The notes: generated by a model from the sequence alone, not told the origin. A stretch of DNA of 64,000 nt from Macrostomum lignano (GCA_002269645.1 NIVC01001067.1:69107-133106), one strand, 5' to 3'. Counted from the first letter of the stretch, positions 3,001 through 51,118 are shown. Made by a program: numbers and translations.

Positions 3001-6000
3001 CTTCGTCTTCAACTTGTTTGAAACCTGAACTGATTGTCTGAATTAAAGCCGGGTGTTACAAAATGTGCATAATCACTTGAACAGAAATGCCTCGACGACA
3101 TTGCGCTACGTTTAAAAGGGAATTGCTGAGATGTCAAGGTCTAATGGGAATTGCTGAAATGTCAAGGCTTAGTGGGGAAATTCCAGAGATGTAAAGTTCT
3201 GGGGTGAATGGCTAAGATTTCAAGGCTTGCTGGGGTATAATTGCTTAGAAGTCAAGGCTTATTGTGGGAATTTTTGAGATATCCATTCTCACTGGGTGGA
3301 ATTGCTGAGATATCAAGGCTCACCGGGGGGAATTGCTGAGATATCAAGGCTTACCGGGGGAATTGCTGAGATATCAAGGCTCACTATTGGTGGATAATCA
3401 TTGGTGGAATTGCTGCGATATATAACTGTCTAATGGGTGCTGTTGTAAACTGTCTAATTGGTGCTGTTGTAACTGTCTAATGGGTGCTGTTGTAAACTGT
3501 CTAACGGGTGCTGTTGTAACTGTCTAACGGGTGCTGTTGTAACTGTCTAATAGGTGCTGTTGTAAACTGTCTAACGGGTGCTGTTGTAACTGTCTAACGG
3601 GTGCTGTTGTAACTGTCTAATAGGTGCTGTTGTAAACTGTTTAACGGGTGCTGTTGTAAACTGTCTAACGGGTGCTACATGTATTGTAAACTGTCTAACG
3701 AATGCTGTTGTAAACTGTCTAACGGGTGCTGTTGTAACTGTCTAATAGGTGCTGTTGTAAACTGTTTAACGGGTGCTGTTGTAAACTGTCTAACGGGTGC
3801 TATTGTAACTGTCTAACGGGTGCTGTTGTAAACTGTTTAACAGGTGCTGTTGTAAACTGTTTAACGGGTGCTGTTGTAAACTGCTTAACGGGTGCTATTG
3901 TAACTGTCTAACGGGTGCTGTTGTAAACTGTTTAACAGGTGCTGTTGTAAACTGTCTAACGGGTGCTATTGTAAACTGTCTAACGGGTGCTGTTGTAAAC
4001 TGTCTAACGGGTGCTGTTGTAAACTGTCTAACGGGTGCTGTTGTAAACTGTCTAACGGGTCCTGTTGTAAACTGTCTAACGGGTGCTGTTGTAAACTGAA
4101 AAGAAAAGTGCTTGCTCGAAAAAATGTTTGGGACACGCAAAGCAGGTCAGCCTGGTAATCTATATAACTAAATCTGAAAAGTTTCTGTTTGTATGTGTGT
4201 AAATAATCCATTTTTAAAAAATTAAATTTTTATGTCCTGCAAAGCGAGTCTAATTGCTAGTTTTTAACTAAAAGTCCTCTTTTCTATAGCCAAATGCATC
4301 CGTAAATTTTCCGGCAACAATAATAAAACAGCCGGCAAACAATTGAATTGGTGCCGAAAGGCTCACTGCCGAAAAAACCACAGACGAAAGGGTACAATGC
4401 ACTTTATGAGTCTTAGCTAAGCTAGAGAAGCCAGTACACCATTTTACCTCCTATTTTTAGCAGTCTTGTTCAAAAGAAACAAGCAGAACTTCAATTCAAA
4501 CACTTTAAGAAATATCAGCCCTTGCGGAACTTCAATTCAAACAAAGTCCCTTTCTATTGAAACAGAAGAACTTCAATTCAGACTGTCTGTGGCCAAAATT
4601 GTCCCCGAATGACGCGCATGCGCAGATTTGAAATTCAAAAGAAACAAAGTCACATTCTATTTCGACAGAGATTTTTGCACATACATTTAGATACAAGTAC
4701 ATTTTTAGTACATTAATCTAATTTTTTGTTTTTCCTGTACTGCATAACTGTACAATCGTTGCGCAATAAGAAACGATATGAATGCTAAAGAGTGAAGATC
4801 AGATTGAAGAAGACGATGAATTGCTGGAAGAAGTTGGAATTTGAAGCAGAATTCGATGAAGATATCATGGAACAGCAGCCTCGGCAGTACGCAATTGTAA
4901 GCAACAGTGACAGAGACCGTATCATCAAGGCTGCTGATCGTGAGGATGACTTTGTGGAACTGGCGCGCCAACTTGGAGTCAAGAGGTCAACAGCGTACAC
5001 GATTGTAAGGTCAGGGAGAGCGGAAAAGCAGCCTACGAGATTCCAGACTCCATTCAGGTGAAGCGGCGGCTTCCACCCTACCATCATTTTGACTCCTGTG
5101 GAGAACTTAATGTCTTGTTGGAAGGCCGCTCTGAAGAGAGAACTGGCAGCAGACCAGCAAAATTTTATCGCTCCGATAGCTGAGCAGCACGGGAACCAGT
5201 CGATGGCGGCCTACGGTGAGACATTCCGTACAGCATGGTGGACAGAACCATTGGCTGCATCTCTGTGGACAAGTGCACTGAGTGGTGCAACCATGTGTTT
5301 ACATGCTTCCCTCGCTGCCTTGGTGGACAGGCAATTGATGGTCAGGTGTCTCAAGTTGGCCAACTGACACTGTCTTGTTTCTGTTTTTCATTTTAGTCTT
5401 ATGTTCGTCGATATGTTGTGTTTTATCCCTTTGTCGAAATAGAATGCGACTTTGTTTCTTTTGAATTTCAAATCTGCGCATGCGCGTCATTCGGGGACAA
5501 TTTTGGCCACAGACAGTCTGAATTGAAGTTCTTCTGTTTCAATAGAAAGGGACTTTGTTTGAATTGAGGCTCCGCAAGGGCTGATATTTCTTAAAGTGTT
5601 TGAATTGAAGTTCTGCTTGTTTCTTTTGAACAAGAATTTGCTAAAAATAGGAGGTAAAATGGTTGTACTAGGCTGCAGAGGACTGAAGTGATGTATATGT
5701 AATGGATGTAAATTTCCTAAATAAAGAAACTGCAATCGATAATTTGTCAGATCAGTCGACTAGAACGCTAAGACATCCCGCGGTGCTTAAGTTGACATTG
5801 CCTTTAAGAACGCCAGAATTTCAATCCTAGCATGAAATTCTCAATCTCTTCTTAGCTATCATATCGGCCTGCATATTACTGTAATAACTTTCCACTGCAG
5901 GCAGCCAACCTGCTGTGCCAGACAAGCCGTGCGGTGTACGGCCCGCCCAGGACACCTGTCATGCTATCGACTGCTGCAGCAGCTTCTGTGAGGACAGTTT

Positions 6001-7357
6001 CAAGAAACTACTTGGATTTCCTTTTACAAATGTTCATCTCGTGCGGGCTACTAGACCAAACTGCACCGATGAACTTAGAGTGAGCTTCAGCTTCCATGAG
6101 AAACAAATCATAAGACGGCTGAACACAGTTCAGGGCCAACTGTTCGTAATCATCAAGTACATATTCAAGCGATATTTGCCTCTCAAAATGAGTACACCTG
6201 GACTCAAGACTTATCATGCAAAAACTCTGATTTTCTTTATGCTAAAGAAACATGGAATAAAGCTCGGGCCGGCTTGGATGCCTCATCGTTTACTTCCACG
6301 GCTGTTGGAGGCTCTCGACATGATGCTGGACTTCATCAACTCAAGCAGCTCACCGGACGAATGTATGCCGCACTTTTTTATGCCTGACGCTCCCCTTTAC
6401 TTCAAGAACGCTGGAGTCGGCGGTGACTTCAACAACACGAAGTCGAGGGTTCGAGAGCGTCTGAGCGAACTCAGAGACAACATCGGCGTAGTGTTTGTGG
6501 AGCTTAAAAAACTCGTGAAGCCTCTTGATCAGTCGAAGAGTTTTTACTTTCATCCTTTCACTCTGCTGCCTCTGTCAGTGCCGCCTGTCGTCACAACTCC
6601 AACCGGGGACGAAACAGAATGGCAAGTGCAGTATTATAAGCTGGCAAATACATACAACCTAATTTATCACTGTTTGAAAGAATTGCAGTCGGAATCGAGT
6701 GACCAGAATAATCTGATGGGGCACCTAAGTCGCTTGAAAGAGCAGCCTTGGTGTCGATGCGCTGCTCTGTGCCTAAAAACAATGGCCTGTTTGAAGTCCC
6801 AAAATGTCCAAGAAGCTGTGAGACTCGCTCTAGACTTACAGAAGCATCGAGTAAAACAAGGATTCAAGCCTGAGGAAATTAAGTCAGTCTATTACCGCCA
6901 ATGCAATTATCGCGGAGTTGAACTGCCCACAGACTCAGACTGGGCTTGGAGGTTCTGCCTCCCCTGCGACTCTCCGCCTAGCTTTTCATTCCTTCCCGAG
7001 TTCACGCAGACTCTGTTCACAACCAGACTATCACAGCCTCGGTCCTCCCATCTGTACGTGAACTTCCGCTGTCTGAGCTGGAGTCTGCAAGCTGAGCTGC
7101 TCCGCGATCGCTCTGCACCTGCAATCGAATTTGACAGTTGGAAGACAGAGTTGGATGAAAACCCGGACTTGGAGGAGCTGCTTACTCTGGCTCAGTACAG
7201 CAACTGCCGCGAGCACGTAGCGTTCTGTCTGCGAACAATGAAGGTGATCAAGCAGAAGAAACGCGTTGCCATTGAGGACCAGGATAATAAGAAGATCGGT
7301 CAAGTCAGAGAGAAGTTGAAAAGCTTTGATGCAGGCTATTTCTGCCAAGTTTTATAG
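1..7357 (+). CDS. Ankyrin-repeat + Mab-21/cGAS-like (cGLR) nucleotidyltransferase; 5' end lies outside the window or is frameshifted
   Basis: Exon ..484 encodes ankyrin repeats (SRTALSRACKAGHVGAVKALLNKGAD, GLTCVQVAERYGQQQVLRLM) and ends in a phase-2 GT at 485. Exon 876-1258 (ttcag acceptor, phase 2) carries the NTase motif GSCAEG...DSDID and ends in a phase-1 GT at 1259. Exon 5901-7357 (ctgcag acceptor, phase 1) carries AQDTCHAIDC, VHLV, LRVSFSFHEKQII, KTYHAKTLIF and CMPHFFMP, all typical of Mab-21 domains. All splice phases match. Confidence 0.8.
2032..2055 (+). repeat. Short interstitial telomere-like tract (TTAGGG)3 TTAGAG
   Basis: Read directly from the sequence, inside the cGLR intron. 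Confidence 0.7.
2391..2945. mobile_element. Foldback/MITE-like element with ~130-bp imperfect inverted arms
   Basis: 2391-2520 (gaagtttagtctatggccatagacatattgagctctcactgcg...tacactaattagatagg) is the reverse complement of 2826-2945 (cctatctaattagtgtatttttctcgcagtgagagctcaatacgtctacagccatagactaaacttc). No TSD was identified. Confidence 0.55.
3121..4098. repeat. Intronic tandem arrays: degenerate ~30-bp unit (3121-3420), then 23-24-bp unit gggtgctgttgtaaactgtctaac (3425-4098)
   Basis: Visible periodicity; source of the TAPVRQFT-type ORFs. Confidence 0.9.
4437..5665 (+). mobile_element. Internally deleted Tc1/IS630-type DNA transposon with ~240-bp TIRs and TA TSD
   Basis: Left arm 4437-4672 is the reverse complement of 5425-5665, with TA at 4435-4436 and 5666-5667. 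The interior encodes an HTH (DRDRIIKAADREDDFVELARQLGVKRSTAYTIVRSGR) joined almost directly to a frameshifted C-terminal motif LPPY..(F)LTPVENLMSCWK, equivalent to LPPYSPxLNPIE. The DDE core is missing. Confidence 0.8.
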
Positions 7358-9457: not shown

Positions 9458-11388
9458 CTACTGAGCATCTAACTTCCGAAGCTTTCTATCATGGGATGTC
9501 GTCGGTATTGGTGGGAGTTTTGACGAGCGTCTTACTAGTCCTTTGAAAAAAACGTTGGCTAGCCGACGGGACACACTGTCCATGCTGAACTGTGTCTTAG
9601 TTGGAAAGTAAAAGTCCTTAATAACATAAAACAGCTTCTGCACGCGAGTTGCGCACGTACGAGAGTGCAGAATAAAACTGCTGTAGCAGAGACAGGATAA
9701 GTCTAACAGCCATTGTGGAGGATGACAAAGCTTTCCGCGAGATAACTCTTCAGTGAATTCGCTGGCTGGAATGCTCGTCTCTGATATCAAATCTGTCCCT
9801 TTGATGCCTTCTTTAGTCGCTGTATAACCTGTCAATTTCCAATAAGCACGGTTTGAATTGTTTTTATGAGATTGTGTAAAACCTCGTTGTGAATTAAATT
9901 TTAATTAATATCCAGCTTACCTGCGATATAGTAGAGCGAAGCCATCTCCGAAATGGAAAGCTCCTCTGATTTAGCAGCACAATTGCTGACGCATTGGCTG
10001 ACGCATTTTCGCAGAAACTCCGCAGACAAAATGTATGTCGGCAATAGTCGGACTACAAACGGTTTTCCACCAAGTAATGGCTTTACCATTATGGCCAAAA
10101 TTGTCCTAGCAACCTGGTCCGGATCGTCGACGGCTCGACCCAGAAGGTGACGGCATCGATATCGAACGGACGGTTGTGTGTACATTTCGTCAAACATAAT
10201 TACGCAGTTTCGCTGAGCTCCTGATAGACTAGCAAAAACTGACTGGATCACATCGGCTGCGTCGGTTTCTGTGCCAACTTCTCCTGTACCTGCTAGTTGC
10301 AGCTGCAGCGTTCGGGGATGAGGCAATGGCAATAGCTTCCGTAGGTAAGAGTAAGCCGAACTACTGATCAAGAAGAGCAATGCTGACTGTCGCACTAGTG
10401 AAATGTCATAGCGGCGATTGTTCCGATTTACTAATGTAAGGCTAAGTTGTCGAATCAAAAACTGAAGCGACGGATGCAAATCAGAGTCAGAATCTATATC
10501 ATCACTGATTCTACTAACAAACGCTTCGACTTCACGTTGGGGATTGGCGTCGGAATTTTTGCACCGCACGACAACAGCATCCAGTTGCGACCAGCGCTTG
10601 AGTGTCGGTTGAAATCCCAACAAGTCTCGAACCGAAATCGGTGTATGCAGTTTGAATTCACGAATCAGAAAGTTGGGTGAGACAAAAATTCGAACACACA
10701 GGTCTCCATCTTTATCTAACGTAAACAAGTAAACGTCTTCGTTCAGAATAGCTGTGTTCAGCGCATGTCGAGATACGACATCCGAATTTTTCACCTCAGC
10801 TCGAAAACTTTCCCATGCCGGCAAAAAATCAAGCAGCTGAAAAGCGTCCATCTCATCGATGTCGCCGCACCTCGCGTCAGAAAGAACACCGCGCTTTTCG
10901 GCCTGTCGGTCCTGATCTAAAATAAGAGTTAAAATAAAAGTAAGATAATTGTGAGCGGCAAAATCGATATAGACGCTAAGTGTTGAGCAATCTTTAAGTT
11001 ACGTACCTTGGTTCTGAACAAAACACGAGCTAGGAACTCCATTAAAAACAGAAGGAGGATTAATTGGCCTTTCGGTAGAGTTTTTCTTGACCATTGGAGC
11101 ATCGCTTGGCCAATGCTTTACGCACACGCCCATATTGTCAGTCACTCTCTAAAACAATAAATTTTGGGTTTCAAGTTGTTTGGACGAGACTGGCATGCAG
11201 AATTGAAGCGGAATTATGCAGCAGTAATGACAGCAAATGATCTGGTTTCTTATCTGGAGAATATTTGGCAGCGCCTTTCTCCATCGCTCTCGCTCCTGTG
11301 GATCTCTGGGAAACGCAAATGTCCATGTTCGAACGGCTTCAGAGTTGTAATTTGACGAGCACGGAAATACCCTGCACTTTCTTGGCAT
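9458..11388 (-). mobile_element. THAP-domain P-element-like (THAP9-type) transposase, four exons, internally deleted
   Basis: Exon 11388-11254 (MPRKCRVFPC...FPRDPQERERW) and exon 11148-11007 (GVCVKHW) together give the THAP C2CH finger. Exon 10916-9921 has YSYLRKLLPLPHPRTL, CVIMFDEMY and LYYIAG. Exon 9828-9458 has SRGKLCHP. The first intron donor reads AT instead of GT. Termini were not found. Confidence 0.8.
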
Positions 11389-21728: not shown

Positions 21729-23974
21729 ATGGTTAGTGTTCTTTTTTTCTCTGTTTTTTCTTGTGTTCTAATAATAATTGTTTGATCAGTGTAACAAAAT
21801 AAACTGAATTTCAGGCTGATTCAACCACTGTTGCGGCTACCACGGCCGCTCCGGCTTCTGTGGATCTGCTGTTGGAACCTTGGCTAGTTGTTGTCATCAT
21901 AGTTATTATAGATTTTGTCATACAATGGATCTGCTTTCCAATTGCTTACGGATTGAAAACGGAGAAATTCTACGATATGGCCGGCTCGTTGACTCATCTG
22001 ACTGTTGTGTGGGTGGCCTTTGGTCTTCTGGCCAGCTATAGGCATATAAGATGCATTGTGCAGAGCGTCTGCGTGTCCGTGTGGGCTGTGAGACTGGGTA
22101 TTTTTCTGGTTTACAGGTAAGTTAGGGATTAGTTACTGTTATATTTGACTTCAGGGAAATTTCTTGTTTAAGCTTTTCAGATCCTCAGGATTAGTCAATA
22201 GCCTCTCTCAGATCCTCCCAGAGTGTCACTTTCTGGGCCAGTCTCCCAGATTCTCAGTTGCTGGGCCACCAGCCTCCCAGATCCTCAGTTGCTGGGCCAG
22301 CCTCCCAGATTCTCAGTTGCTGGGCCACCAGCCTCCCAGATCCTCAGTTGCTGGGCCAGCCTCCCAGATTCTCAGTTGCTGGGCCACCAGCCTCCCAGAT
22401 CCTCAGTTGCTGGGCCAGCCTCCCAGATCCTCAGTTGCTGGGCCAGCCTCCCAGATCCTCAGTTGCTGGGCCAGCCTCCCAGATCCTCAGTTGCTGGGCC
22501 AGCCTCCCAGATCCTCAGTTGCTGGGCCAGCCTCCCAGATCCTCAGTTGCTGGGCCAGCCTCCCAGATCCTCAGTTGCTGGGCCAGCCTCCCAGATCCTC
22601 AGTTGCTGGGCCAGTCTCCCAGATCCTCAGTTGCTGGGCTAGCCTCCCAGATCCTCAGTTGCTGGGCCAGCCTCCCAGATTCTCAGTTGCTGGGCCACCA
22701 GCCTCCCAGATCCTCAGTTGCTGGGCCAGCCTCCCAGATCCTCAGTTGCTGGGCCAGCCTCCCAGATTCTCAGTTGCTGGGCCACCAGCCTCCCAGATCC
22801 TCAGTTGCTAGGCCAGCCTCCTAGATCCTCAGTTGCTGGGCCAGCCTCCCAGATTCTCAGTTGCTAGGGCAGCCTCCCAGATCCTCAGTTGCTGGGCCAG
22901 CCTCCCAGATCTTCAGTTGCTGGGCCAGCCTCCCAGATCCTCAGTTGCTGGGTCACCAGCCTCCCAGATCCTCAGTTGCTGGGCCAGCCTCCCAGATCCT
23001 CAGTTGCTGGGCCAGCCTCCCAGATCTTCAGTTGCTGGGCCAGCCTCCCAGATCCTCAGTTGCTGGGTCACCAGCCTCCCAGATCCTCAGTTGCTGGGCC
23101 AGCCTCCCAGATCCTCAGTTGCCGGGCCAGCCTCCCAGATCTTCAGTTGCTGGGCCAGCCTCCCAGATCCTCAGTTGCTAGGCCAGCCTCCTAGATCCTC
23201 AGTTGCTGGGCCAGCCTCCCAGATTCTCAGTTGCTAGGGCAGCCTCCCAGATCCTCAGTTGCTGGGCCAGCCTCCCAGATTCTCAGTTGCTGGGCCAGCC
23301 TCCCAGATCCTCAGTTGCTGGGCCAGCCTCCAAGATCCTCATGTGCTGGGCCAGCCTCCCCAATCTTCATCCCAGCCACCCTCATCCCCGCCGCCAGGGC
23401 CGCCAAGTACGGCGACAAAAGATTCGAAGAGATCCGAAAAAGCTGCGTTCGGTTCTTCATCACGTGGACACTGCAGGCTGTGTGGGTTGGCTGCAACCTG
23501 GCACCCACCATCGCCAGCCTGACCGCATCTGCTACCCTGGCAACTCCCGGCAGCTTGGAATGGCGCGACTATCTCGGCTGGAGTCTGTTCCTCATCGGCA
23601 TACTCACGGAGACTGTGTCGGACATTCAAAAGTCCATATTCAAAGCCAAGCCGGAGAACAATGGCCGATTTATTCGGTCGGGACTGTGGTCGATTTCTCG
23701 ACATCCGAACTATTTCGGAGAAATTCTACTATGGTGGGGCCTGGCTATCTCTGCATCGGCTGGTTTCCACTATTCTAACGAATGGTGGTTCTGGTTCACC
23801 TTTGTTGGCCCGCTGCTCAATACTCTGCTCATCTGCTTTGTGAGTGGTATTCCACTATTAGAGAAGTCCGCTTATAAGCGATGGGGCGAAGATCCCGAGT
23901 ATCAGGACTACTTGAAGAGTACACCTGTACTTGTGCCACTAATCCCGTGCCCGCTGTGCGACTTCTGCAAGTGA
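21729..23974 (+). CDS. DUF1295 / steroid 5-alpha-reductase-like membrane protein; exons 21729-21731 (ATG), 21815-22116, 23398-23974
   Basis: Family motifs KTEKFYDMAGSLT, WAVRLGIFL.YR|AAKYGDKRFEEIR, WTLQAVWV, ETVSDIQK, GLWSISRHPNYFGEILLWWG and SGIPLLEK. Splice phases are consistent (0 and 2). The ATG-only first exon is less certain. Confidence 0.85.
22200..23345. repeat. Intronic tandem array, 28/32-bp unit ctcagttgctgggccagcctcccagatc
   Basis: Fills intron 2 of the DUF1295 gene and grades into the splice acceptor region. Confidence 0.9.
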
Positions 23975-26225: not shown

Positions 26226-27014
26226 ATGGCACCGAATGAACTGGCTGAGTGGTACTGGAATGTACCGCGCCTGTCTCGCTACTGGTTCACTGGCAGCGTT
26301 GTCCTGCCATTGCTCGGGCGCATCGGCCTATTGAGTCCCTACTCAATGATTCTTGTCTGGGAGAAGCTTGCTTATAGCTTCCATATCTGGCGTCCAATCA
26401 CAGCCCTGCTGTACTATCCCATATCGCCTCAGACAGGATTTCACTATCTGATTAATTTGTACTTCCTGTATTCGTACTCCACCGCTCTGGAGTCTGGTCA
26501 GTTTGCTGGCAATCCAGCTGAGTATGCTTTTCTATTGCTGTTCTGCTGGATCTGTCTGGTTGCTCTTGGTTGCGCTGTTGGTCTGTACCTGCTGATGGAC
26601 CCGATGGTGTTGGCCGTGCTGTACATCTGGTGCCAGTTAAATCGGGACACCATTGTGCAGTTCTGGTTCGGCATGCAATTCAAAGCCATGTACCTGCCTT
26701 GGGTATTGCTGGCCTTTAATATGATTATTCAGGGCGGTGGCTTCACTGAACTGCTTGGCATCCTTGTTGGCCATCTGTACTTCTTCTTGGCCTTCAAATA
26801 TCCTCAGGATTTGGGCGGCCGTCAGCTGATTGGAGCTCCGGAATTTCTTTATCGCCTGTTGCCTAGGCAACGCGGTGGCGTCTCCGGCTTCGGAGTGCCG
26901 CCTAGCAACAGGCGACGCGAAGATGGCACCGACGGAGCCGGCGATGACGAAAGACGCGGTGGCTGGTTTCAGAACCGGTTCCCCGGGGCTGGACACCGGT
27001 TGGGTCAGGATTGA
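26226..27014 (+). CDS. DERL1: Derlin-1 (ERAD rhomboid pseudoprotease), single coding exon, 262 aa
   Basis: RYWF...LPLLGRIGLLSP, IWRPITALLYYPISPQTGFHYLINLYFLYSYSTALE, FWFGMQFKAMYLPWVL, GILVGHLYFFL, and a C-terminal SHP box FPGAGHRLG. Confidence 0.95.
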   Translation: MAPNELAEWYWNVPRLSRYWFTGSVVLPLLGRIGLLSPYSMILVWEKLAYSFHIWRPITALLYYPISPQTGFHYLINLYFLYSYSTALESGQFAGNPAEYAFLLLFCWICLVALGCAVGLYLLMDPMVLAVLYIWCQLNRDTIVQFWFGMQFKAMYLPWVLLAFNMIIQGGGFTELLGILVGHLYFFLAFKYPQDLGGRQLIGAPEFLYRLLPRQRGGVSGFGVPPSNRRREDGTDGAGDDERRGGWFQNRFPGAGHRLGQD

Positions 27015-28392: not shown

Positions 28393-35111
<6,719 letters not shown>

Positions 35112-42520: not shown

Positions 42521-45490
42521 AGCTTTGCACTTTACCAGCCTTAGTAGTCTGAGAGAGTTCTCTGTTGGGTGTTGCTGCTTCAACAAGTGCCAGTTTTAAT
42601 GCTATTCAATGTTTAATATCCAAGTCATGTAGATATTCTTGAACAATTAATAGTATCTATCTTCTAGTTAAAATCTGAAATTTGAATGAAATAAGCAAGC
42701 AATAGATAAAAAAGCAATATTTTTTCAATAAAAAAGTAGGAAAAATTCAGTTATATCTGATTTATATTCATTATAAAAGCTACTATATTATCTAATAGAC
42801 ACCAACAGAAATTAATCTACAAAAACAAAAAAGTAAATAAAAATAGAATAATGCTAACAAAAATCAGGAATAAACAAGGACTAACAACCATAGCCTCATA
42901 GGACAATTTTGCTATTAATAAGAATATTATGATTTAGTTATAATGATAATCTTGCAAAAATGCAATCAAAAAGCTTGATTTTTCATTTGCAATTTCAAAT
43001 AAAGTAAAGAACTTATTGCTTGTTTATAAAATTATAGGACAAAAATAATGTAGGATTGTAAGTGTAAGACAATTAAAATTGTCATTAGAATAGGCCCCTG
43101 CTTTACATTTTTAAAGAACTAGCATTGTAAAACATTATTATTCAGCCATTTAAAGGCAATGATCCAGGCCTCTTCATGAATTAACTTTGATTTGTGAATT
43201 TTTTTGTAGAATAACACTGTATTGTGACACTACACATTGCATATATGCTTATGTCATAATAATTACTAATACTATGCATTTTCAAAGCATCTACCTGCTC
43301 TGTCTCTTCCTAAAAAGCTTGCTTGCTGAAGCTTTGATTTGGCAATCCTCGGCCTGAGCAGAAACTTTTATATAGAATTGGTGTACACCATGGGTCCAAG
43401 ACGAGGCCAGACCAGACAAGACAAGGTAGTACTAGTACTAGTCTAGTCTAGACTTCTGTCTTAAAACTTAAAGTCTAAAGCTAAGAAAACTAAAATATAA
43501 AATAAAATTGAATTTTTTGTGTAGGCAATATCTTACTAACCGCGAACTCAAAATATACTGATGAGTTTTAAAAGGCCTGTATTTGATATTTCACAAACTT
43601 CATCATGAAACTTGTTAAATAGTGGGGATTATAAGAGACCTTATTTCTCGTTTGTATCCAGTAATTAAGGCATCTTATGGTGATTAGTGATATTTCTGTA
43701 AGCTGCTTACTTTTTAAGACGACATTTTTATTGTACTTCAAAACATTTTATTGTTAAGGTGATGCGTTAGGGCGATGATGATAAAAATATGATTATGCTA
43801 ATTTTGTTTTAAAAAGCAAAAAACTTGACGAGTTTGACCTGTTAATAGCTAAGTAACCTAAGTTCGACACATAGCATACGATTGGAATTGTAAAATTGCA
43901 CAGAAATTTCAAACATTTCTGTGCTTTATCATTTTATAGCCATTCATCATTAGATAACACCATCATCCCGAAAAATCATTGGCTTAGTAATATACACGGT
44001 CTGCTTGCATCAGTTTTAATTAAAACATATTTTGTTGCACCGCTAGCGTTAAATTCTTTCCTAGCTCATCATCGTCCTTCAGCGTCTTCTACACTGAGTG
44101 ACATATATACGGACATGAAGTCAGGCACGGTGCTTCTCTTGCTGGCGATATACTTACTTCACGTCGAATTCGTACGCCATCGCAGCCTGTCAGCCCATGA
44201 CATGTCGCAGTCGCCTGTGCCCTGTGCCAGCATGATGATTGGTTGAGTAAGGCCATGCAGCGAGAGGGCCAGCAGTCAGGCCCTTGTCGCTGATCCCATA
44301 GCTTTCTCAAACGTATCCTCAGGCATGCACACTCTATGTATAATTATACTCTCCTTTGGATGAAATTGCAGAAATCTTTGACCACGCGGTTTACATGTAC
44401 TTTTACGAGGCCTAGGCCGGTTTTAGTGTAAATAGTTGAAGGATCTGCTCCTGCCGCCCCCTGACTTTCACTAATACAGAGACTTCATTGAGGCAATGAA
44501 GCTGGACAATAAAACAAAAGATTTTGCGGGACCCACTACACGAGTTAGAATCCATTCACCATTGCCTTAAGCGCATTAATTGTGATCCCTCCGGGTTGCT
44601 AGGGTGAAAAAATGGTAGCTATATATATTGAAAGAGGTTAGAGTGCCGCAACGTGCGCGGCCTCATCAAAATCCTACGAGGTACATGTATAGCCCGGGTG
44701 CTTTGGCCTTGGTAACCCGGGGCAGCAGAGTTAGGAAAATGATGCTGGTAGTGTAGGATACTGCAGGGGCCTTGATGCTGGTGGGTTGGCACGCACAAAG
44801 CCTCTGGATAGATAGAGATGGGAAAAAGACAGAAGAGGCTGCATATTTTTTAGACCTGCATGACATGCGCAAGTTAGAGAGTGGTAAAGATCGAGGCCGC
44901 TGCGTAACAAAATTTCAGGTCTTCAATGGCGATTTTAATTTTTCCCCAAAAGCCATTGATGAAATAATTCGTAGGGAGGTTTTGACAGCTTCTTTTTCTT
45001 CTTTTCTTCCACCGCCCCACAACGCTGCCGCTGGCAGCTGGGGGGAGGGCGCTCAGAGGCGCCCCAACCTGCGAAGGAGGGCGATAAGGGGCTCCGGGTC
45101 GTCGCGGATGTCCCTCTCGTCCTCAGTGCTCGCCCGAAGGGCGTCGCCGCGTGGGCATTCAAGGATGATATGCTCCTCCGTGTCGGGCGCCCCGCAATCG
45201 GGACAGCTGGCGTTCTCAGTCAGGCCGACCCGGTGACGTGTGGCCCCGGCCAGGGTGGAGCACCCGGCTCTGAGTTGGTTAATCGCCACCGTTTCTTTCC
45301 TGGTCAGGTGTCGTGGTGGTCGTTGCCAGGGGCGTCCAAGCAGTTCCTGGTCGCGGGCGGACCGCGCGCGTCGGATGGCGGCCTTGGCGGCCTGCAGCGT
45401 AATGGGTTCGTCCTGCTGTTGGCCGCGTCTAGCTTCGTTGGCGCAGCGGTCTGCTTGCTCGTTGCCCGGGACGTCGCAGTGGGCCGGGAC

Positions 45491-45635
45491 CACGGACTAC
45501 TTAAGTAGAAGGACGCGACACGCGCAAAACGTGCAAATTTTATTGGAGGCTGAATATTCAATTTTATGTAGCTCGACTCCAGAAACTCGCCGAAGTGTAG
45601 TTTTTTCTATATAAACGACAATTAAGTAGTCCGTG
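45491..45635. mobile_element. 145-bp MITE (probably P superfamily) inserted in the LINE RNase H
   Basis: Perfect 14-bp TIRs CACGGACTACTTAA / TTAAGTAGTCCGTG. 8-bp TSD GCCGGGAC at 45483-45490 and 45636-45643. Removing it restores FVWVPAHCDVPGNE in frame. Confidence 0.9.
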
Positions 45636-48600
45636 GCCGGGACCCAGACGAAGTCGCACGGGCGCGACATGTGGGCCAGTACCTCCCAGCAGCGGCTTCC
45701 GGCGGCGGTGACCTGCCTACTGGGGCCGCTCTGGAGGGCCGTGAGTGCTGATTTGGAGTCGCTGAGGATCCGCACTGTAAGGCCGTGCTCTGGCGGGAGT
45801 TGAGTAATGTAGTCGAGGGCGGCGCTGATCGCGACCATGTCCGCCTGGAAGCTGCATGCGATCCGGCCAGCCGGGGCGGTGATCTTTTGGCACCAGAGGC
45901 GGGTGCAGACCACCGCGGCACCCCATGCGTCGTGGATGCCCTCCTTGACGCTGCCGTCCGTCCACGCGTCGATGTCACAGGGTGTTAGCTGCTCGAGAGC
46001 TGACATCGCCCTGTCGCGGCGGACGCTCGTCGGGACTGCTCTGCCGCAGCCGTCGGCGAGGGTGAAGTCAAAAGTATGGCTGTACCGGTTGAGCGCGAGG
46101 TGTGCCAGGTCGGGCGGCGGTGGCGGGAACGGCTCTCTGGGCCGGTCTTCGAGGCCACAGGGACCGGTGATTTCTCTCGCGATTCGCCACCAGCAGCCGC
46201 GGAAAGGGCGCTTGTAATCATTGTCTAGTAGCGCGTTAAAATTTGCCTCTTCTTGTCGGCGGGCGCTCTCGTAGGCGCGGTTTCGTAGTCTGCTGGTGGT
46301 GTCTCTGGCCGCAGTCCAGTGTGCTGGGACGTCCTCCGGGAGGCGCAGCACCCGTTCTCGGAGGCAGGCGGCGCGTTCCAGGATGGTGTGGCCAAAGGGG
46401 GGAGGTTGGCCGTCCGAAGCAGCTCCGTGGTTCGAGTTGGGAGCATACATCCGGTGATGATTCTTGCGCAGCTGTTCTGTTGCTGTTCGATAAGCAGTTT
46501 GGTGCTCGGTGCCGCGCTGGCTCCCCAGACTCCGCATCCGTATTCGGCCACGGCGCGGATGGTTGCCTGGTAGGCCGTCCGGAGCCCCTCCTGGGTGGCT
46601 CCTACCGCGCGGTTCGCGAGGTCGGCAAGAGCGCGTCGGCGTCGGCTCATGCGGCGGCAGACGTTGGCTGCGTGCTGGGCGAAGTTCAGCTGACAGTCCA
46701 GGATGAGGCCCAGGAAGGTCGGGTGTTCTTCAAACTGGAGTGGCTCGCCGGCTAGCTCGATCGGGACCCGGAGCTTGCCGTTCACCTCGTTGGGGGCGAG
46801 CGTGAATGTTGAGTAGTTGCACTTGCTGGTACTCAGGGTGATTTTCCACTCTTTGGTCCAGTTGGCTATAGCGTCGAGTGCCGGTTGTATCCTGGCTCCG
46901 CAGCTCGCCAGTGAGGGCTGGGTGCTGAGGACAGCCGAATCATCGGCGTAGAGGCTGATGCCGCAGTCCGGCGCTGCTGTCGTGACTGCCTCCTCTAGGT
47001 CATTCACGTAGATGTTCCAGAGAGTTGGCGCCAGGACCGAGCCTTGTGGGAGTCCCTCTCGGAAGACGCGCTGGCGGCTCAGGGTGCGCCCGAAGCGGAC
47101 TCTTGCGCGTCGGTCGGAAAGGAAGGCTTCCGTCCAGCCGATGGTGTTCTGGTCGATCTTTACTCGAGTCATCTTCACAACGAGGCCTTCCTTCCAGACC
47201 GTTTCGTAGGCTCCTTTGAAGTCCATGCACGCGAGGATGCTCCTGTGCGGTGGAGAGCGTTCCAGGCCGTCGAAGATGTCCTGACAGACCCTGGCGAGCT
47301 GCTCCTCGGTGCTGCGGCCTCTGCGGAATCCGGCTTGTGCCGGGGACAGGGAGCCGTTGGTTTCGAGCTGGCGGTTGAGTCTTTGGAGCACCATCCTCTC
47401 CGCACATTTGGCGATGCAGCTCGTAAGGGCCACCGGTCGGTAGGATGTTGGGAGGGTGGCGTCTTTTCCTTTTTTGGCAATTGGGATGATGATTGCCGAC
47501 CTCCAGCTTCTGGGGCAGCGCTGTTGTATCCACGTGCGGTTGATGAGGTCCAGGAGGCGTTGGTCGGTGGCCGGTGGGAGGCGTTTGAGCATCTCGTTGG
47601 TAACGCCGTCTTCCCCGGCGCTTTTGCCGGATTTGAGTTGTCGGATAGCTGATCTGAGCTCCAGGAGAGTGAAGGGTACCGGCGGCTGGGCTGGTCGTCT
47701 CCTGGCGCGTCTTGCCTCGTAGCGGATCTTGTAGTCCTCCTGTCGGCGGGGGACCCTGGCGGCAGCGGCGTAGATTTGGCAGAAAGTGTCTGCCTTTTCT
47801 TTGTCGGTGCGCACCGGTCGGAGCTCGACGCCGTCGACCGACTTCCGGGTGATGTCGACTTTGCCGCGCGGGACTGGCGTATCTCCTCTGGCTGCGCGCA
47901 GGAGCCGGAAGAGGTTGCTATCAACCGTCATTTCGCTGGCGCGGTCTTCCAGGAAGCCTCTGCGCTCTTTGCGGATGGTATTGCTGGCGGTATGTCGAGC
48001 TGCGTTGTAGGCCGCGAGGTTTTCTGGAGTCGGATCGGACTCGGGCGTCGCCCTTGCTCTGATGCAGGCTTGTCGGCTGATTTCGCAGTCTGGGGTCCAG
48101 AAAGGGCAGCGGTTGTTTTTGGGGCTGCCTCTGGGGATCGCCTGAGTGGCGGCCTCGATGATGTCGGCGCAGAGGGCCGCGTGTTCAGGGTCCACGTCAC
48201 CCCAGTCCTGGGGTCCTTGGATGTCAGCTAGATGTTGTCTGAAGGCGGGCCAGTCGGCCTTGGCGAAGCTCCAGCGAGTGATACCGTGCTTGAGTTCGCG
48301 CCTTGCCATTGCCAGCGGGAAGGTGATGGGGAGATGGTCGCTGCCCATATCCTTTTCGGTCCTCCAACCCGCCGGGATGATCGCGGTCAGGAATCCCTTT
48401 GCCAGCGTCAGATCGGGTGAGCTCCGGGATCCGCTGCTCGGGCTGCTCCTGGTGTGGCTGGTTCCGTTACAGACGTGGAGGCCGTTAGTCGCGCTCCAGT
48501 GTTCGATGAGGTGTCCCCTAGCGTCTTCATCGGTCCACCTGTCCCAGCAGCCGTGGCCGTTGAAATCGCCACAGATGATGGAGTTGGGGCCCACGGGCAG

Positions 48601-49448
48601 GGTGTCGAAGTTCGGAGTCCAAGTGTCCTGGCGCTGGGCGCTGGTTGGCGGGGCGTAGATATTAACGACGGTGATGGGGGACTTGCCGGTGATGTGAAGG
48701 ACGATGGCGGCCGCATCGAGTTTGCCTTGGTCCTGTGCGATCGTGGGTAGTGTGCTGTACCTCACGTCCGAGCGAGTCATGATCAGGACGCCGCCCCTGC
48801 TGGTTGGTTTTTTTTGCCTTTTTGGTTTTCTCCCGGCTAGTGGCGCGCCCGTCTCCTCTCGTTCTCTGGCCTCGGTTTGCTCGGGGCCTGCATCTGTGCC
48901 TGGCCACGGGGCGTCGCGTTCGGTACAGGCGGTACGTCCACTGCGGCATCCGCGGCACCATCTGGCCCGATCGTCTGGAAAGCGGAGGCGGCACCGTGGT
49001 CTCGTCACTCGCCTGGTCGCGGTGCGGGCCACAGGTCGTTGCTGTTGCTGTTGTTGGGTGCCGGTATTGTTGGTGTCCGTGTTGTCGTCTCGAGCGCTCT
49101 CCGTTTCCTCGTTGTAGGGGAGTCCGTCGACTCGCGCTGCGATGCAGTAGTCGGTTGGGGGGGGGGGGTGAACTCCTCGTCGGGCACGAGCTTTGTCTCC
49201 TAAGGGCCTAAGGAGGAGGGCCGGGCGGTTCTTGGCGAGCCAATGGGTCAGCTCTGTGAGGCGTGCTTTCAGTCCGTTGGCGTTGAACTGAAGTGCTCGG
49301 AGCTCTTGATCCGGCTCTGCGCTGGGCCGTCCGTCTCGACGTTTCCGGGCGCTACGGCGTGTCTTGCGGTGGTTGGCTGGGGCGATGGTGGAGTCGCCGC
49401 CTCGCAGCCTGAGCACCGTGTGCATCTCTTCGCAGGTTCGGTGGTAGG

Positions 49449-49526
49449 GGAGACCGTTAGTCGGTACTCCGACGCGATTTCTCGGTCGGTCCAGGGGCAC
49501 GTCGTGGACGTCGTCTCCAAGCCCCC
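49449..49526 (-). ncRNA. HDV-like self-cleaving ribozyme at the exact 5' end of the LINE
   Basis: Manual fold: P1 GGGGGC/GCCCCU (G1-U wobble), P2 GGAGAC/GUCUCC, P3 ACG/CGU, L3 UCCACGA with CC pairing GG (P1.1), P4 CCGAC-CGA GAAA UCG-GUCGG, J4/2 CUAA. G1 is the first base after the TSD. Confidence 0.7.
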
Positions 49527-51118
49527 GTTTTGACAGCTGCTACTGCTGCTGCTTCGAGAGACCGTTCCTGGCTTGAGCTCTGATTCCCTCAGCTAAACTG
49601 CTCAATTCAACTCTCCCATGATGCGCGAATACTGGGAATCCAGTTTTGTAGGCACGCTTGAAACCATAGCGATCCACCACGCTATCACCGAAGTCATCAC
49701 TGCTTCATTAACGATGTCTTAGTTTTTTGGGAATAATTCTGCGGAATTATACATGCATATGCTAGCTAGCTATAGGATATTTGCTAGAGCCAGCTTTTAA
49801 ACTTTCTGCTGGATGCCAGGACGACGCCTTTGGAAGTGTTGTTGGCTGAGCTGTCAAAAAAGATGGTCACTCCTGTTTCCTGATGCAATCGATCGAGTCA
49901 CAAGTTCTGTGCAGCCAGGGTCGACAGAAGGAATTGCGCTCGACAGGGCACAATCGACTTTGGTGGAGTTTCGAGTTTTCTGTCGGTGATAGACTCTTGA
50001 CTCATGATCTACGAAGGAGGGAGGGACAGCAGGTGAGCTGACGGAAGGATCTGGAAAAGACATGTGTGATGGGTTTCGACCTTTCGGCCCCCTTGTGGGG
50101 AAGCCTTCGGCCTCAGGTCTCAGAAATAAATCAATTAGAGTCCTGGCCCCCCACTCCTGTCAGATGGTCAGCCCCATGGTAGCTTGATCTGTGGCGAGCA
50201 GTCTATAGGTCCTATAGCTAAGAGAGGGACAGCGAGAGACAAGCAGGGAGAATTTTGAAGGTAGAGATCAGCTAATCCGCAGATTAACTAACCCGCTGCC
50301 ACCAGCCCGTACGTCCTGGCTCACACCGGGACTCGAAATCGGGCTTTGCACTTACCTGCCAACTAGTGTCTTTTTGCTGTCAATCTCGAAGTCATAGCCG
50401 ATGATAAGGGACACTGCTGGGACTAGATCGCATTTGCCATGCAGGTACAGAGGGGACTTGTGCAGGGGATTCTTGCAGTGGCGAGACTATGGGGTAGCTA
50501 CATGTACTATTACATTGCTAAATACAAAGAATTGTACTTTTGGCCTTCAACGCGCCAACCAGCCTCTCCTAGCGCTGATGATAGGCTAACTCGAACCTCA
50601 GAGACTGCATGATTCATCACCCGAGCCGCTTGGCTAACCTAGACTGCACAGAGTACATCTCTGGAGCCGATTCTGTACTATTGGCAATTTCGCTAACTGA
50701 TTTGATAGATTGATCGACTGAGAACTGCCTTGCCATGCTGCCTTGCCTTGCCACTGTGACTGGCGCCTACTAGCTTAGCTACTCATCTGAGCCATCGGCG
50801 AACAAAGAAATAAAACCGATAAAAATAACTGTCAGACTTAACCTTCTTCTTAGATCACTTCACACTTCAGATTGAATTGGAGTTTTAGACTACTAGCAGT
50901 ATTATTGAATGATTTCTGCCTCAGTAACAGCACTGCTGAACAAATGAGCAAAAGTGTGCGCCTAATCCAGCTACTGAAACAGGGGACAGATAGGGATTCA
51001 CCCAATCAAGTAAGTCTAGGCAGCCTCTCACCCAACCAATCAGAAACTCAACAGCCGGAGACCAGGTAATCCGCAGTGACCAAATCGGCTTAGTGCTTCG
51101 CAGCTGTAGACCCGGGCT

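Follow-up and report, generated by a model that had tools for sequence, protein, structure and literature searches.

The 64,000-nt stretch of Macrostomum lignano DNA analysed here as a whole (GCA_002269645.1, NIVC01001067.1:69107-133106; hereafter the window) carries on its minus strand a long interspersed nuclear element (LINE) whose protein opens with a near copy of the last ten residues of ubiquitin. The element is bounded by a target-site duplication (TSD), differs from its surroundings in base composition (GC ~60% vs ~40% in the host DNA), and is built, in order, of a predicted ribozyme, the ubiquitin-tail motif, a basic region, APE, reverse transcriptase (RT), RNase H, a CCHC motif and a GAA/A-rich tail. 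The domain order APE-RT-RNase H-CCHC is that of I/Ingi-group LINEs, and the open reading frame (ORF) is broken in the window copy. The 1,091-aa ORF at 49500-46225 matches Exo_endo_phos_2 and RVT_1 in Pfam, and RNase H and CCHC lie downstream in shifted frames. The features of the element, in window positions, are:

44990..49526, minus strand: LINE, 4,537 nt, full-length but defective (TSDs; Pfam APE and RVT_1; RNase H by homology to P0001, a related protein)
49527..49537, minus strand: 5' TSD copy GCTGTCAAAAC, 11 bp, exact repeat of 44979-44989, abutting element nucleotide 1
49449..49526, minus strand: candidate self-cleaving ribozyme like that of hepatitis delta virus (HDV), element nt 1-78, double pseudoknot (descriptor scan)
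49426..49524, minus strand: in-frame leader codons GLGDDVHDVPLDRPRNRVGVPTNGLPYHRTCEE, without stop and without AUG (frame reading)
49396..49425, minus strand: MHTVLRLRGG, mimic of ubiquitin 67-76, its Met codon being the first AUG in the element RNA
49393..49416, minus strand: conserved core VLRLRGG+D, family consensus V-[LM]-R-L-R-G-G-[DN]-[SG] (alignment, codon comparison, PDB profile)
49336..49395, minus strand: basic region DSTIAPANHRKTRRSARKRR, resembling a nuclear localization signal (NLS) or nucleic-acid-binding stretch, the N-terminus after putative cleavage; basic character kept, sequence not
48319..49302, minus strand: APE endonuclease domain (Pfam), with two frame lesions and a lineage-specific insertion of ~100 aa
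48925..48996, minus strand: Cys knuckle RCRLRFPDDRARWCRGCRSGRTAC within the APE insertion, conserved in P0001 and P0168
46777..47478, minus strand: reverse transcriptase domain (Pfam RVT_1, E = 4.8e-36)
45440..45973, minus strand: RNase H domain, split by a 143-bp miniature inverted-repeat transposable element (MITE); homology to P0001, in which Pfam detects RNase H
45155..45205, minus strand: C-terminal CCHC motif CPDCGAPDTEEHIILEC, conserved in P0001
44990..45010, minus strand: GAA/A-rich 3' tail ggaagaaaagaagaaaaagaa; the related copy L002 ends with a tail of the same kind
44979..44989, minus strand: 3' TSD copy GCTGTCAAAAC, 11 bp, directly after the tail

The motif MHTVLRLRGG is encoded at 49425-49396 (atg cac acg gtg ctc agg ctg cga ggc ggc) and is identical to ubiquitin residues 67-76 at 8/10 positions. 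Its ATG at 49425 is the only one, in any frame, within the first 130 nt of the element RNA; the motif is followed by DSTIAPANHRKTRRSARKRR (49395-49336) and then by the APE domain from LRALQFNANG (49302). This arrangement, which an earlier note on the same DNA had described, is borne out by reading the sequence. The note had also stated that the frame remains open back through the 5' ribozyme, and this is correct: upstream, the frame is open as far as the TAG at 49542-49540, five codons past element nucleotide 1 (49526), and since this TAG sits in host flank, the frame is open across the entire ribozyme. From nucleotide 1 to the motif it is open in all four family members described below. That the element has a single ORF, as was likewise proposed, holds for the ancestral element, whereas the window copy has several frame lesions. 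The hexapeptide LRLRGG occurs once in the six-frame translation of the window (128,000 residues), where composition predicts 0.016 occurrences, and the expectation inside the ORF alone is 0.0003.

Relatives were collected by an exhaustive HMMER search with the N-terminal 370 aa against 1.84 billion representatives and by a word-indexed search. Four family members have readable N-termini, and DNA is at hand for three copies (the window, L001 and L002); P0017 and P0016 are annotated as Macrostomum lignano. The sequences around the motif are:

Window: EEMHTVLRLRGGDST
P0017/P0168, M. lignano, 48% identity: NANLHRVLRLRGGDSN
P0001, 41% identity: ENLLSVMRLRGGNSD
L002, JGI metagenome contig: SCINKVLRLRGGDGG

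The motif itself reads SVMRLRGGNS in P0001, LHRVLRLRGGDS in P0017/P0168 and NKVLRLRGGDG in L002, so that its wider consensus is [LMI]-x-x-V-[LM]-RLRGG-[DN]-[SG]. In the four-way alignment, V-x-RLRGG is the sole contiguous invariant block between the ribozyme and APE. Its flanks cannot be aligned: upstream there are indels of up to ~26 residues, and downstream only the basic character is kept, an Arg/Lys-rich stretch directly following the motif in every member. The residue after Gly-Gly (P1') is D, D, D and N in the family, and never Pro. A fixed position of the motif in relatives had been predicted, and it is found in all four members despite flanks that vary in length and sequence. A metagenome scan with the N-terminal profile returned seven distant LINEs (of 2A+PHD or gag type) and no new member with the ubiquitin tail; a homologue search with N-terminal alignments gave only two distant LINEs, and L003, a Logan contig, was set aside as an informative relative, being degenerate and lacking the motif region. 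Exact-protein database look-ups for the window ORF, P0001 and P0016 returned no record.

The codons of the core in the three DNA copies (window / L001 / L002) are:

V: gtg / gtt / gtc
L (first): ctc / ctc / ctc
R (first): agg / cgt / aga
L (second): ctg / cta / ctc
R (second): cga / cgc / aga
G (first): ggc / gga / gga
G (second): ggc / ggc / gga
D: gac / gac / gac

Synonymous differences are thus present in 6/8 codons and non-synonymous ones in 0/8, which agrees with the further prediction that the motif would diverge synonymously while its flanks drift. Such divergence is the mark of selection on the translated peptide, rather than on an RNA element, and is not due to chance; since the peptide is under selection, translation must start at or before the motif.

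The likeness is to the tail of ubiquitin and to nothing else of it. VLRLRGG equals ubiquitin 70-76 in three members, and the fourth (P0001) has MRLRGG. When the family N-terminal profile was compared with all PDB entries, ubiquitin, the ubiquitin fusions to eS31 and eL40, and NEDD8 were matched, aligned at residues 63-77, with eS31 as the best single-stretch match; the only others were two weak exonuclease III matches, which come from the APE end of the profile. No Pfam ubiquitin-family domain was found at E <= 10 in the sequence up to and including the motif of the window, P0001, L002, P0168 or P0010 (a more distant LINE protein introduced below), and from nucleotide 1 to the end of Gly-Gly the window has only 44 codons. 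A complete or degenerate ubiquitin-like domain upstream, to which the residues RGL..D..VPL and TNG.PYHR.CEE had been considered candidates, was therefore rejected, having no Pfam match and too short a leader. The upstream residues conserved with P0001 and P0017 are the translated core of the ribozyme, which places their constraint at the RNA level. The motif is accordingly a tail-only mimic of ubiquitin. Positions V70, L71, R72, L73, R74, G75 and G76 are conserved and L67/H68 are retained in some members, while the position of L69 varies (T, R, S or K). In ubiquitin, V70-G76 contact deubiquitinases (DUBs), and L69 faces the core. The pattern of variation fits a peptide that would keep the face read by tail enzymes and have no core to pack against.

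The candidate ribozyme, whose presence had also been claimed from the sequence, stands up well in comparison. The strict descriptor gives one match in both strands (128 kb), exactly at 49526-49449, as against 0.3 in shuffled windows, and follows the order P1-P2-P3-L3-P3'-P1'-J1/4-P4-J4/2(C)-P2'. The predicted helices are P1 GGGGGC/GCCCCU (with a G1-U wobble), P2 GGAGAC/GUCUCC and P3 ACG/CGU, and the loops and joins are L3 UCCACGA, J1/4 GG, a P4 region and J4/2 CUAAC, with the potential for a C-G P1.1. Compensatory changes are seen, in three sequences only, in P2 (GGAGAC/GUCUCC in the window, GGAGAAA/UUUCUCC in L002, GCGAC/GUCGC in L001) and in P3 (ACG/CGU, CUG/CGG and GCG/CGC, respectively). 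P1 is intact in the window copy only and retains 4/6 pairs in each of L001 and L002. The predicted G1 coincides with the TSD-defined first nucleotide in both the window (49526) and L002 (1074), the latter having its own 11-bp TSD, GATGATGCTGT, and aligning base for base with window nucleotide 1 from its first nucleotide on; two independent full-length insertions thus start at the predicted cleavage site. An earlier P1 assignment for L002, GAGGGC, was withdrawn, because the TSD shows this stretch to be host flank. No Rfam HDV-family model matches the window or the relatives at the gathering score, nor 49000-50600 at E <= 10. The HDV-like ribozyme is well supported but unproven, and self-cleavage is a prediction.

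Several observations on this part of the element stand by themselves. The L001 insertion was rejected as a guide to the 5' end, its locus (NIVC01002647.1) being rearranged relative to the empty paralogue L011 (NIVC01000019.1): the insertion took the place of 533 bp of host sequence, and the position that corresponds to window nucleotide 1 is preceded by 80 additional nt (1920-1999). In connection with L001 1017-2645 and L011, the GenBank 'hypothetical proteins' PAA56246.1 and PAA91395.1 are chimeric gene models, running in frame from a polyQ C2H2 zinc-finger host gene into a LINE fragment, and PAA93933.1 is an uninterrupted paralogue of this gene. Between the ribozyme and the motif, a CUGCGAA block is common to the window (49437-49431) and L001 (2090-2096), L002 having CUGCCAG; it may act at the RNA level, for instance by extending the ribozyme on its 3' side or by signalling initiation. 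A relaxed HDV-like descriptor matches L006 at ~1595-1700 (P3 GGU/ACC, L3 UCUGCGAU), a metagenomic LINE of the 2A+PHD type whose 2A (at 1821) lies ~225 nt further downstream, and the sister loci L007 and L009 give no equivalent match; applied to 2A-bearing loci, the relaxed descriptor is too unspecific for any conclusion.

N-terminal 2A-like peptides are known in metazoan APE-type LINEs of the Rex1, Crack, L2, CR1 and Ingi clades (Odon et al. 2013, PMC3708506). Among the retrieved proteins, D[VI]ExNPGP lies upstream of APE in ~32/163 outside the family, often followed by a PHD finger, and the closest retrieved relatives, P0019, P0002, P0165, P0042 and others, have a canonical 2A. These LINEs resemble the present family in the position of the peptide in ORF2p, in mostly having a single ORF, and in often having a PHD finger near by; they differ in that the ubiquitin-tail lineage lacks NPGP. 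D(V/I)ExNPGP is absent from the window, P0001, P0017/P0168 and L002, and none of the 166 retrieved proteins carries both signals, as expected from the suggestion that they are mutually exclusive, the 2A being found in the neighbouring clade. In a rough, unbootstrapped neighbour-joining tree of APE domains, three ubiquitin-tail elements form one clade, which is sister to P0008 and adjoins the 2A-bearing P0019 group. With 2A at the same position in sister lineages, the ubiquitin tail fills the 2A slot, and its lineage falls among LINEs that bear 2A. The two groups have in common the ~100-aa APE insertion (~48802-49120 in the window) with its Cys knuckle of the form WCxGC[RK]x3-4C, which is found in the canonical 2A bearers P0019 and P0165, in P0021 with a degenerate 2A, and, apart from these, in P0022 and P0024; in P0168 the insertion additionally holds a PHD-like finger. 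A zinc knuckle inside an APE domain is unusual.

A second occurrence comes from P0010 (MetaClust UPI00039352CB), a LINE protein of 1,436 aa in which an ORF1-like coiled coil and CCHC knuckles accompany APE and RT, and which is only 24% identical to the window ORF. Its residues 59-72 are YADPLRLRGGGDND, with PLRLRGGG at 62-69 and thus Gly at P1'; over the 102,000 residues of the proteins retrieved from outside the family, LRLRGG would be expected 0.016 times. As a single sequence without DNA, P0010 hints at recurrence of the tag.

The window copy is a dead, inactive fossil, and the interest lies in the family feature. Its APE domain has a net +7-nt insertion with a TAG (about 49201-49210) and a 12-C run (49157-49168) that is one C short; a third frameshift falls in the C-run near 46390 (~46383-46395). 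The assembly is one which we take to be PacBio-based, and the two C-homopolymer lesions could be consensus errors; the +7-nt/TAG and MITE lesions cannot be. The MITE-like insertion in RNase H (45492-45634, 143 bp, AT-rich) ends in inverted repeats of 13 bp, ACGGACTACTTAA/TTAAGTAGTCCGT, and its target duplication, (G)GTCCCGGCC, is 9-10 bp long, with copies at 45635-45644 and 45482-45491. Elsewhere in the window, an intronless Derlin ORF has identical counterparts among the genes of two GCA_002269645.1 contigs, and other host-side ORFs include ones that are DUF1295/steroid-reductase-like, a P-element/THAP9-like transposase fragment, Mab-21-like and NUDE C-terminal; the coordinates of the five, as listed, are 26226-27014, 23231-23974, 9901-10851, 5915-7357 and 33096-33803.

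The reading we prefer, although we are not confident of it, is that a host peptidase cuts after the Gly-Gly of the mimic. After release of the element RNA by ribozyme cleavage at G1, translation would begin at whichever in-frame start is at hand, and a ubiquitin-tail-reading host peptidase (ZUFSP/ZUP1-like or USP5-like, rather than a fold-dependent USP) would cut after Gly-Gly, discarding the variable leader and exposing Asp in three members or Asn in one. The ORF protein would thereby gain a uniform N-terminus and possibly become a substrate of the Arg/N-degron pathway, in which Asp and Asn are destabilising residues, and the motif would stand in for the 2A ribosome-skipping peptide of related LINEs. 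The catalytic core of ZUFSP is reported to be highly active on an RLRGG peptide and not on ubiquitin (PMC8776766), and PMC5824887 likewise describes high activity of the ZUFSP/ZUP1 core on the bare peptide; a host activity suited to tail-only mimics therefore exists in eukaryotes. A broader proposal, which we regard as doubtful, is that tail-only mimics of ubiquitin evolved in LINEs at least twice, in Macrostomum and in the lineage of the ORF1-bearing P0010, as processing tags dependent on a host DUB. Such a tag would be interchangeable with 2A, would strip a ribozyme-encoded or otherwise variable leader and would leave the endonuclease-RT protein with an Asp/Asn N-degron.

A number of points weigh against cleavage of this kind. 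Most DUBs need the folded body of ubiquitin: in the split-ubiquitin system, a Cub (residues 35-76)-reporter is left uncut unless the fold is reconstituted, and LRGG-AMC is a far poorer DUB substrate than Ub-AMC. The split-ubiquitin results make an ordinary USP or UCH an unlikely agent, and no ubiquitin domain is detectable upstream of the motif in any member. Furthermore, P0001 has Met at the position of L71, a D/N exchange at P1' is trivially conservative as well, neighbour joining without bootstrap underlies the APE tree, and only four family members were recovered, every copy with DNA being defective. Leader codons up to the end of Gly-Gly number 10 in the window, 18 or 63 in L002 and 37 in L001; as the motif opens with the AUG in the window, there is hardly any need to remove a leader in that copy, and the function that the earlier note had assigned to the tag, removal of a leader made by non-AUG initiation, is not required there. 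Cutting after Gly-Gly is purely what we infer from the sequence, and of the overall interpretation in that note the comparative predictions hold, while the step by a host DUB keeps this status.

The constraint on the peptide could also be met if it were never cut. A conserved, uncleaved peptide might serve as an epitope or decoy for ubiquitin-tail readers (DUBs, E1, tail-binding domains), or as the start of a basic RNA-binding or NLS-type N-terminus making RGG-type contacts, and this we consider rather unlikely, yet worth serious attention. Protein-level constraint is what the codons establish, cleavage being a further step; an Arg/Lys-rich stretch adjoins the motif in all members; fold-dependent DUBs should not cut a bare tail, as is generally known from split ubiquitin; and the Met of the window and of P0001, within or at the start of the motif, is compatible with the motif as the mature N-terminus. 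A basic or RGG-type peptide would, however, leave unexplained the identity to ubiquitin 70-76 in three of four members while the basic stretch drifts, as well as the occupancy of the 2A slot and the exclusivity with 2A, and an uncleaved epitope would not suit readers of a free C-terminus such as ZnF-UBP, which need prior cleavage. Cleavage after or within RLRGG by another protease, encoded by the element or by the host (for example R|GG, leaving an N-terminal Gly), is improbable. It draws on viral polyproteins, in which LXGG-type sites serve the virus's own papain-like or OTU proteases, and on the ~275 residues between APE and RT which, with the APE insertion, have no Pfam assignment. These regions are nevertheless the usual linkers of LINEs, the insertion being a Cys knuckle or PHD finger; no peptidase family is matched in the window ORF (E = 0.01) or in P0001, P0168 and P0010 (E = 10), Pfam scans of the same four yielding APE, RT, RNase H and zinc-finger matches only and no protease domain; and the extended match to ubiquitin (V70, with L67/H68 in some members) points to readers of the ubiquitin tail.

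Origin without function has to be weighed as well. An ancestral element might have picked up the 3' end of a host ubiquitin gene or mRNA at its own 5' end, to be kept as a relic, since LINE 5' ends can gain foreign sequence by template switching, as is generally known, and the likeness is confined to the last 7-10 residues; alternatively, the match might be coincidental. Either is quite unlikely given flanks diverged past alignment with many indels around an invariant VxRLRGG with synonymous-only change, a chance expectation of 0.016 per window, and the second, independent occurrence in P0010. Conservation at the RNA level, with the stretch acting as a 3' extension of the ribozyme or as a translation-initiation structure, would account for the upstream amino-acid likeness (GLGDDVHDVPL..., TNG.PYHR.CEE), which coincides with the ribozyme core, and would accommodate the CUGCGAA block just upstream of the motif in the window and L001. 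It is nonetheless very improbable for the motif, in which third positions mostly differ, and first positions of Arg codons too (agg/cgt/aga), with the peptide unchanged, the opposite of the pattern of an RNA element.

Processing by a host peptidase, if it occurs, would have parallels of several kinds. The trypanosome L1Tc/Ingi elements also have a single long ORF, an HDV-like ribozyme as their first nucleotides (Pr77 in L1Tc; PMC4035085) and, as far as the citation of Heras 2006 in PMC3708506 goes, a short signal for processing that follows the 5' leader and precedes APE; RNase H and a C-terminal Cys motif are present in both, the parallel being one of layout. The signal there is D(V/I)ExNPG|P, acting by ribosome skipping, whereas here it is a ubiquitin-tail mimic, VLRLRGG|D, in a flatworm host, which would need a host enzyme to act on it. 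Natural ubiquitin fusions (polyubiquitin, Ub-eL40, Ub-eS31) likewise place LRLRGG directly before the mature protein, with a residue other than Pro at P1' and a basic stretch after Gly-Gly, and in the ubiquitin-fusion technique the N-terminal residue that is exposed can be chosen and may be destabilising; the natural fusions, however, have the full 76-residue beta-grasp fold that DUBs require, in contrast to the ~7-10 tail residues of the LINE. Ubiquitin insertions in cytopathic bovine viral diarrhoea virus and viral LXGG sites (for the papain-like protease PLpro or OTU) offer the precedent of a selfish element that uses ubiquitin-tail recognition for polyprotein processing, as the LINE may do, but pestiviruses insert whole ubiquitin or a ubiquitin-like protein, with no ubiquitin domain in the LINE, and coronaviruses and tymoviruses bring their own protease, with no protease domain in the LINE. 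The ZUFSP/ZUP1 family enters as a candidate for the enzyme, without homology to the LINE.

No prior description linking LRLRGG or RLRGG to retrotransposons was found in open-access full texts, and ubiquitin is unmentioned in two papers on 2A in LINEs, PMC3708506 among them. The finding suggests an extension of the N-terminal processing modules of ribozyme-headed, single-ORF LINEs, and it offers an independent way into two open questions, namely how a defined protein is made from ribozyme-processed, uncapped LINE RNA and why so many single-ORF LINEs have an N-terminal 2A. M. lignano is a model in which transgenesis is available, so the idea is open to direct reporter tests. If the tail is cleaved, this would be the first known retrotransposon to borrow host deubiquitination machinery for its maturation, and a natural analogue of the ubiquitin-fusion technique, possibly with the N-degron included; DUBs active on the bare RLRGG peptide would also have a substrate of physiological type. 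Should the motif be such a tag, retrotransposons would have a hitherto unrecognised class of signal for host-dependent maturation and turnover, and peptide-competent DUBs such as ZUFSP a natural class of substrates. The presence of a ubiquitin-tail mimic in the 2A slot implies that the job of the slot is to separate the protein from its leader or to define its N-terminus, rather than ribosome skipping as such.

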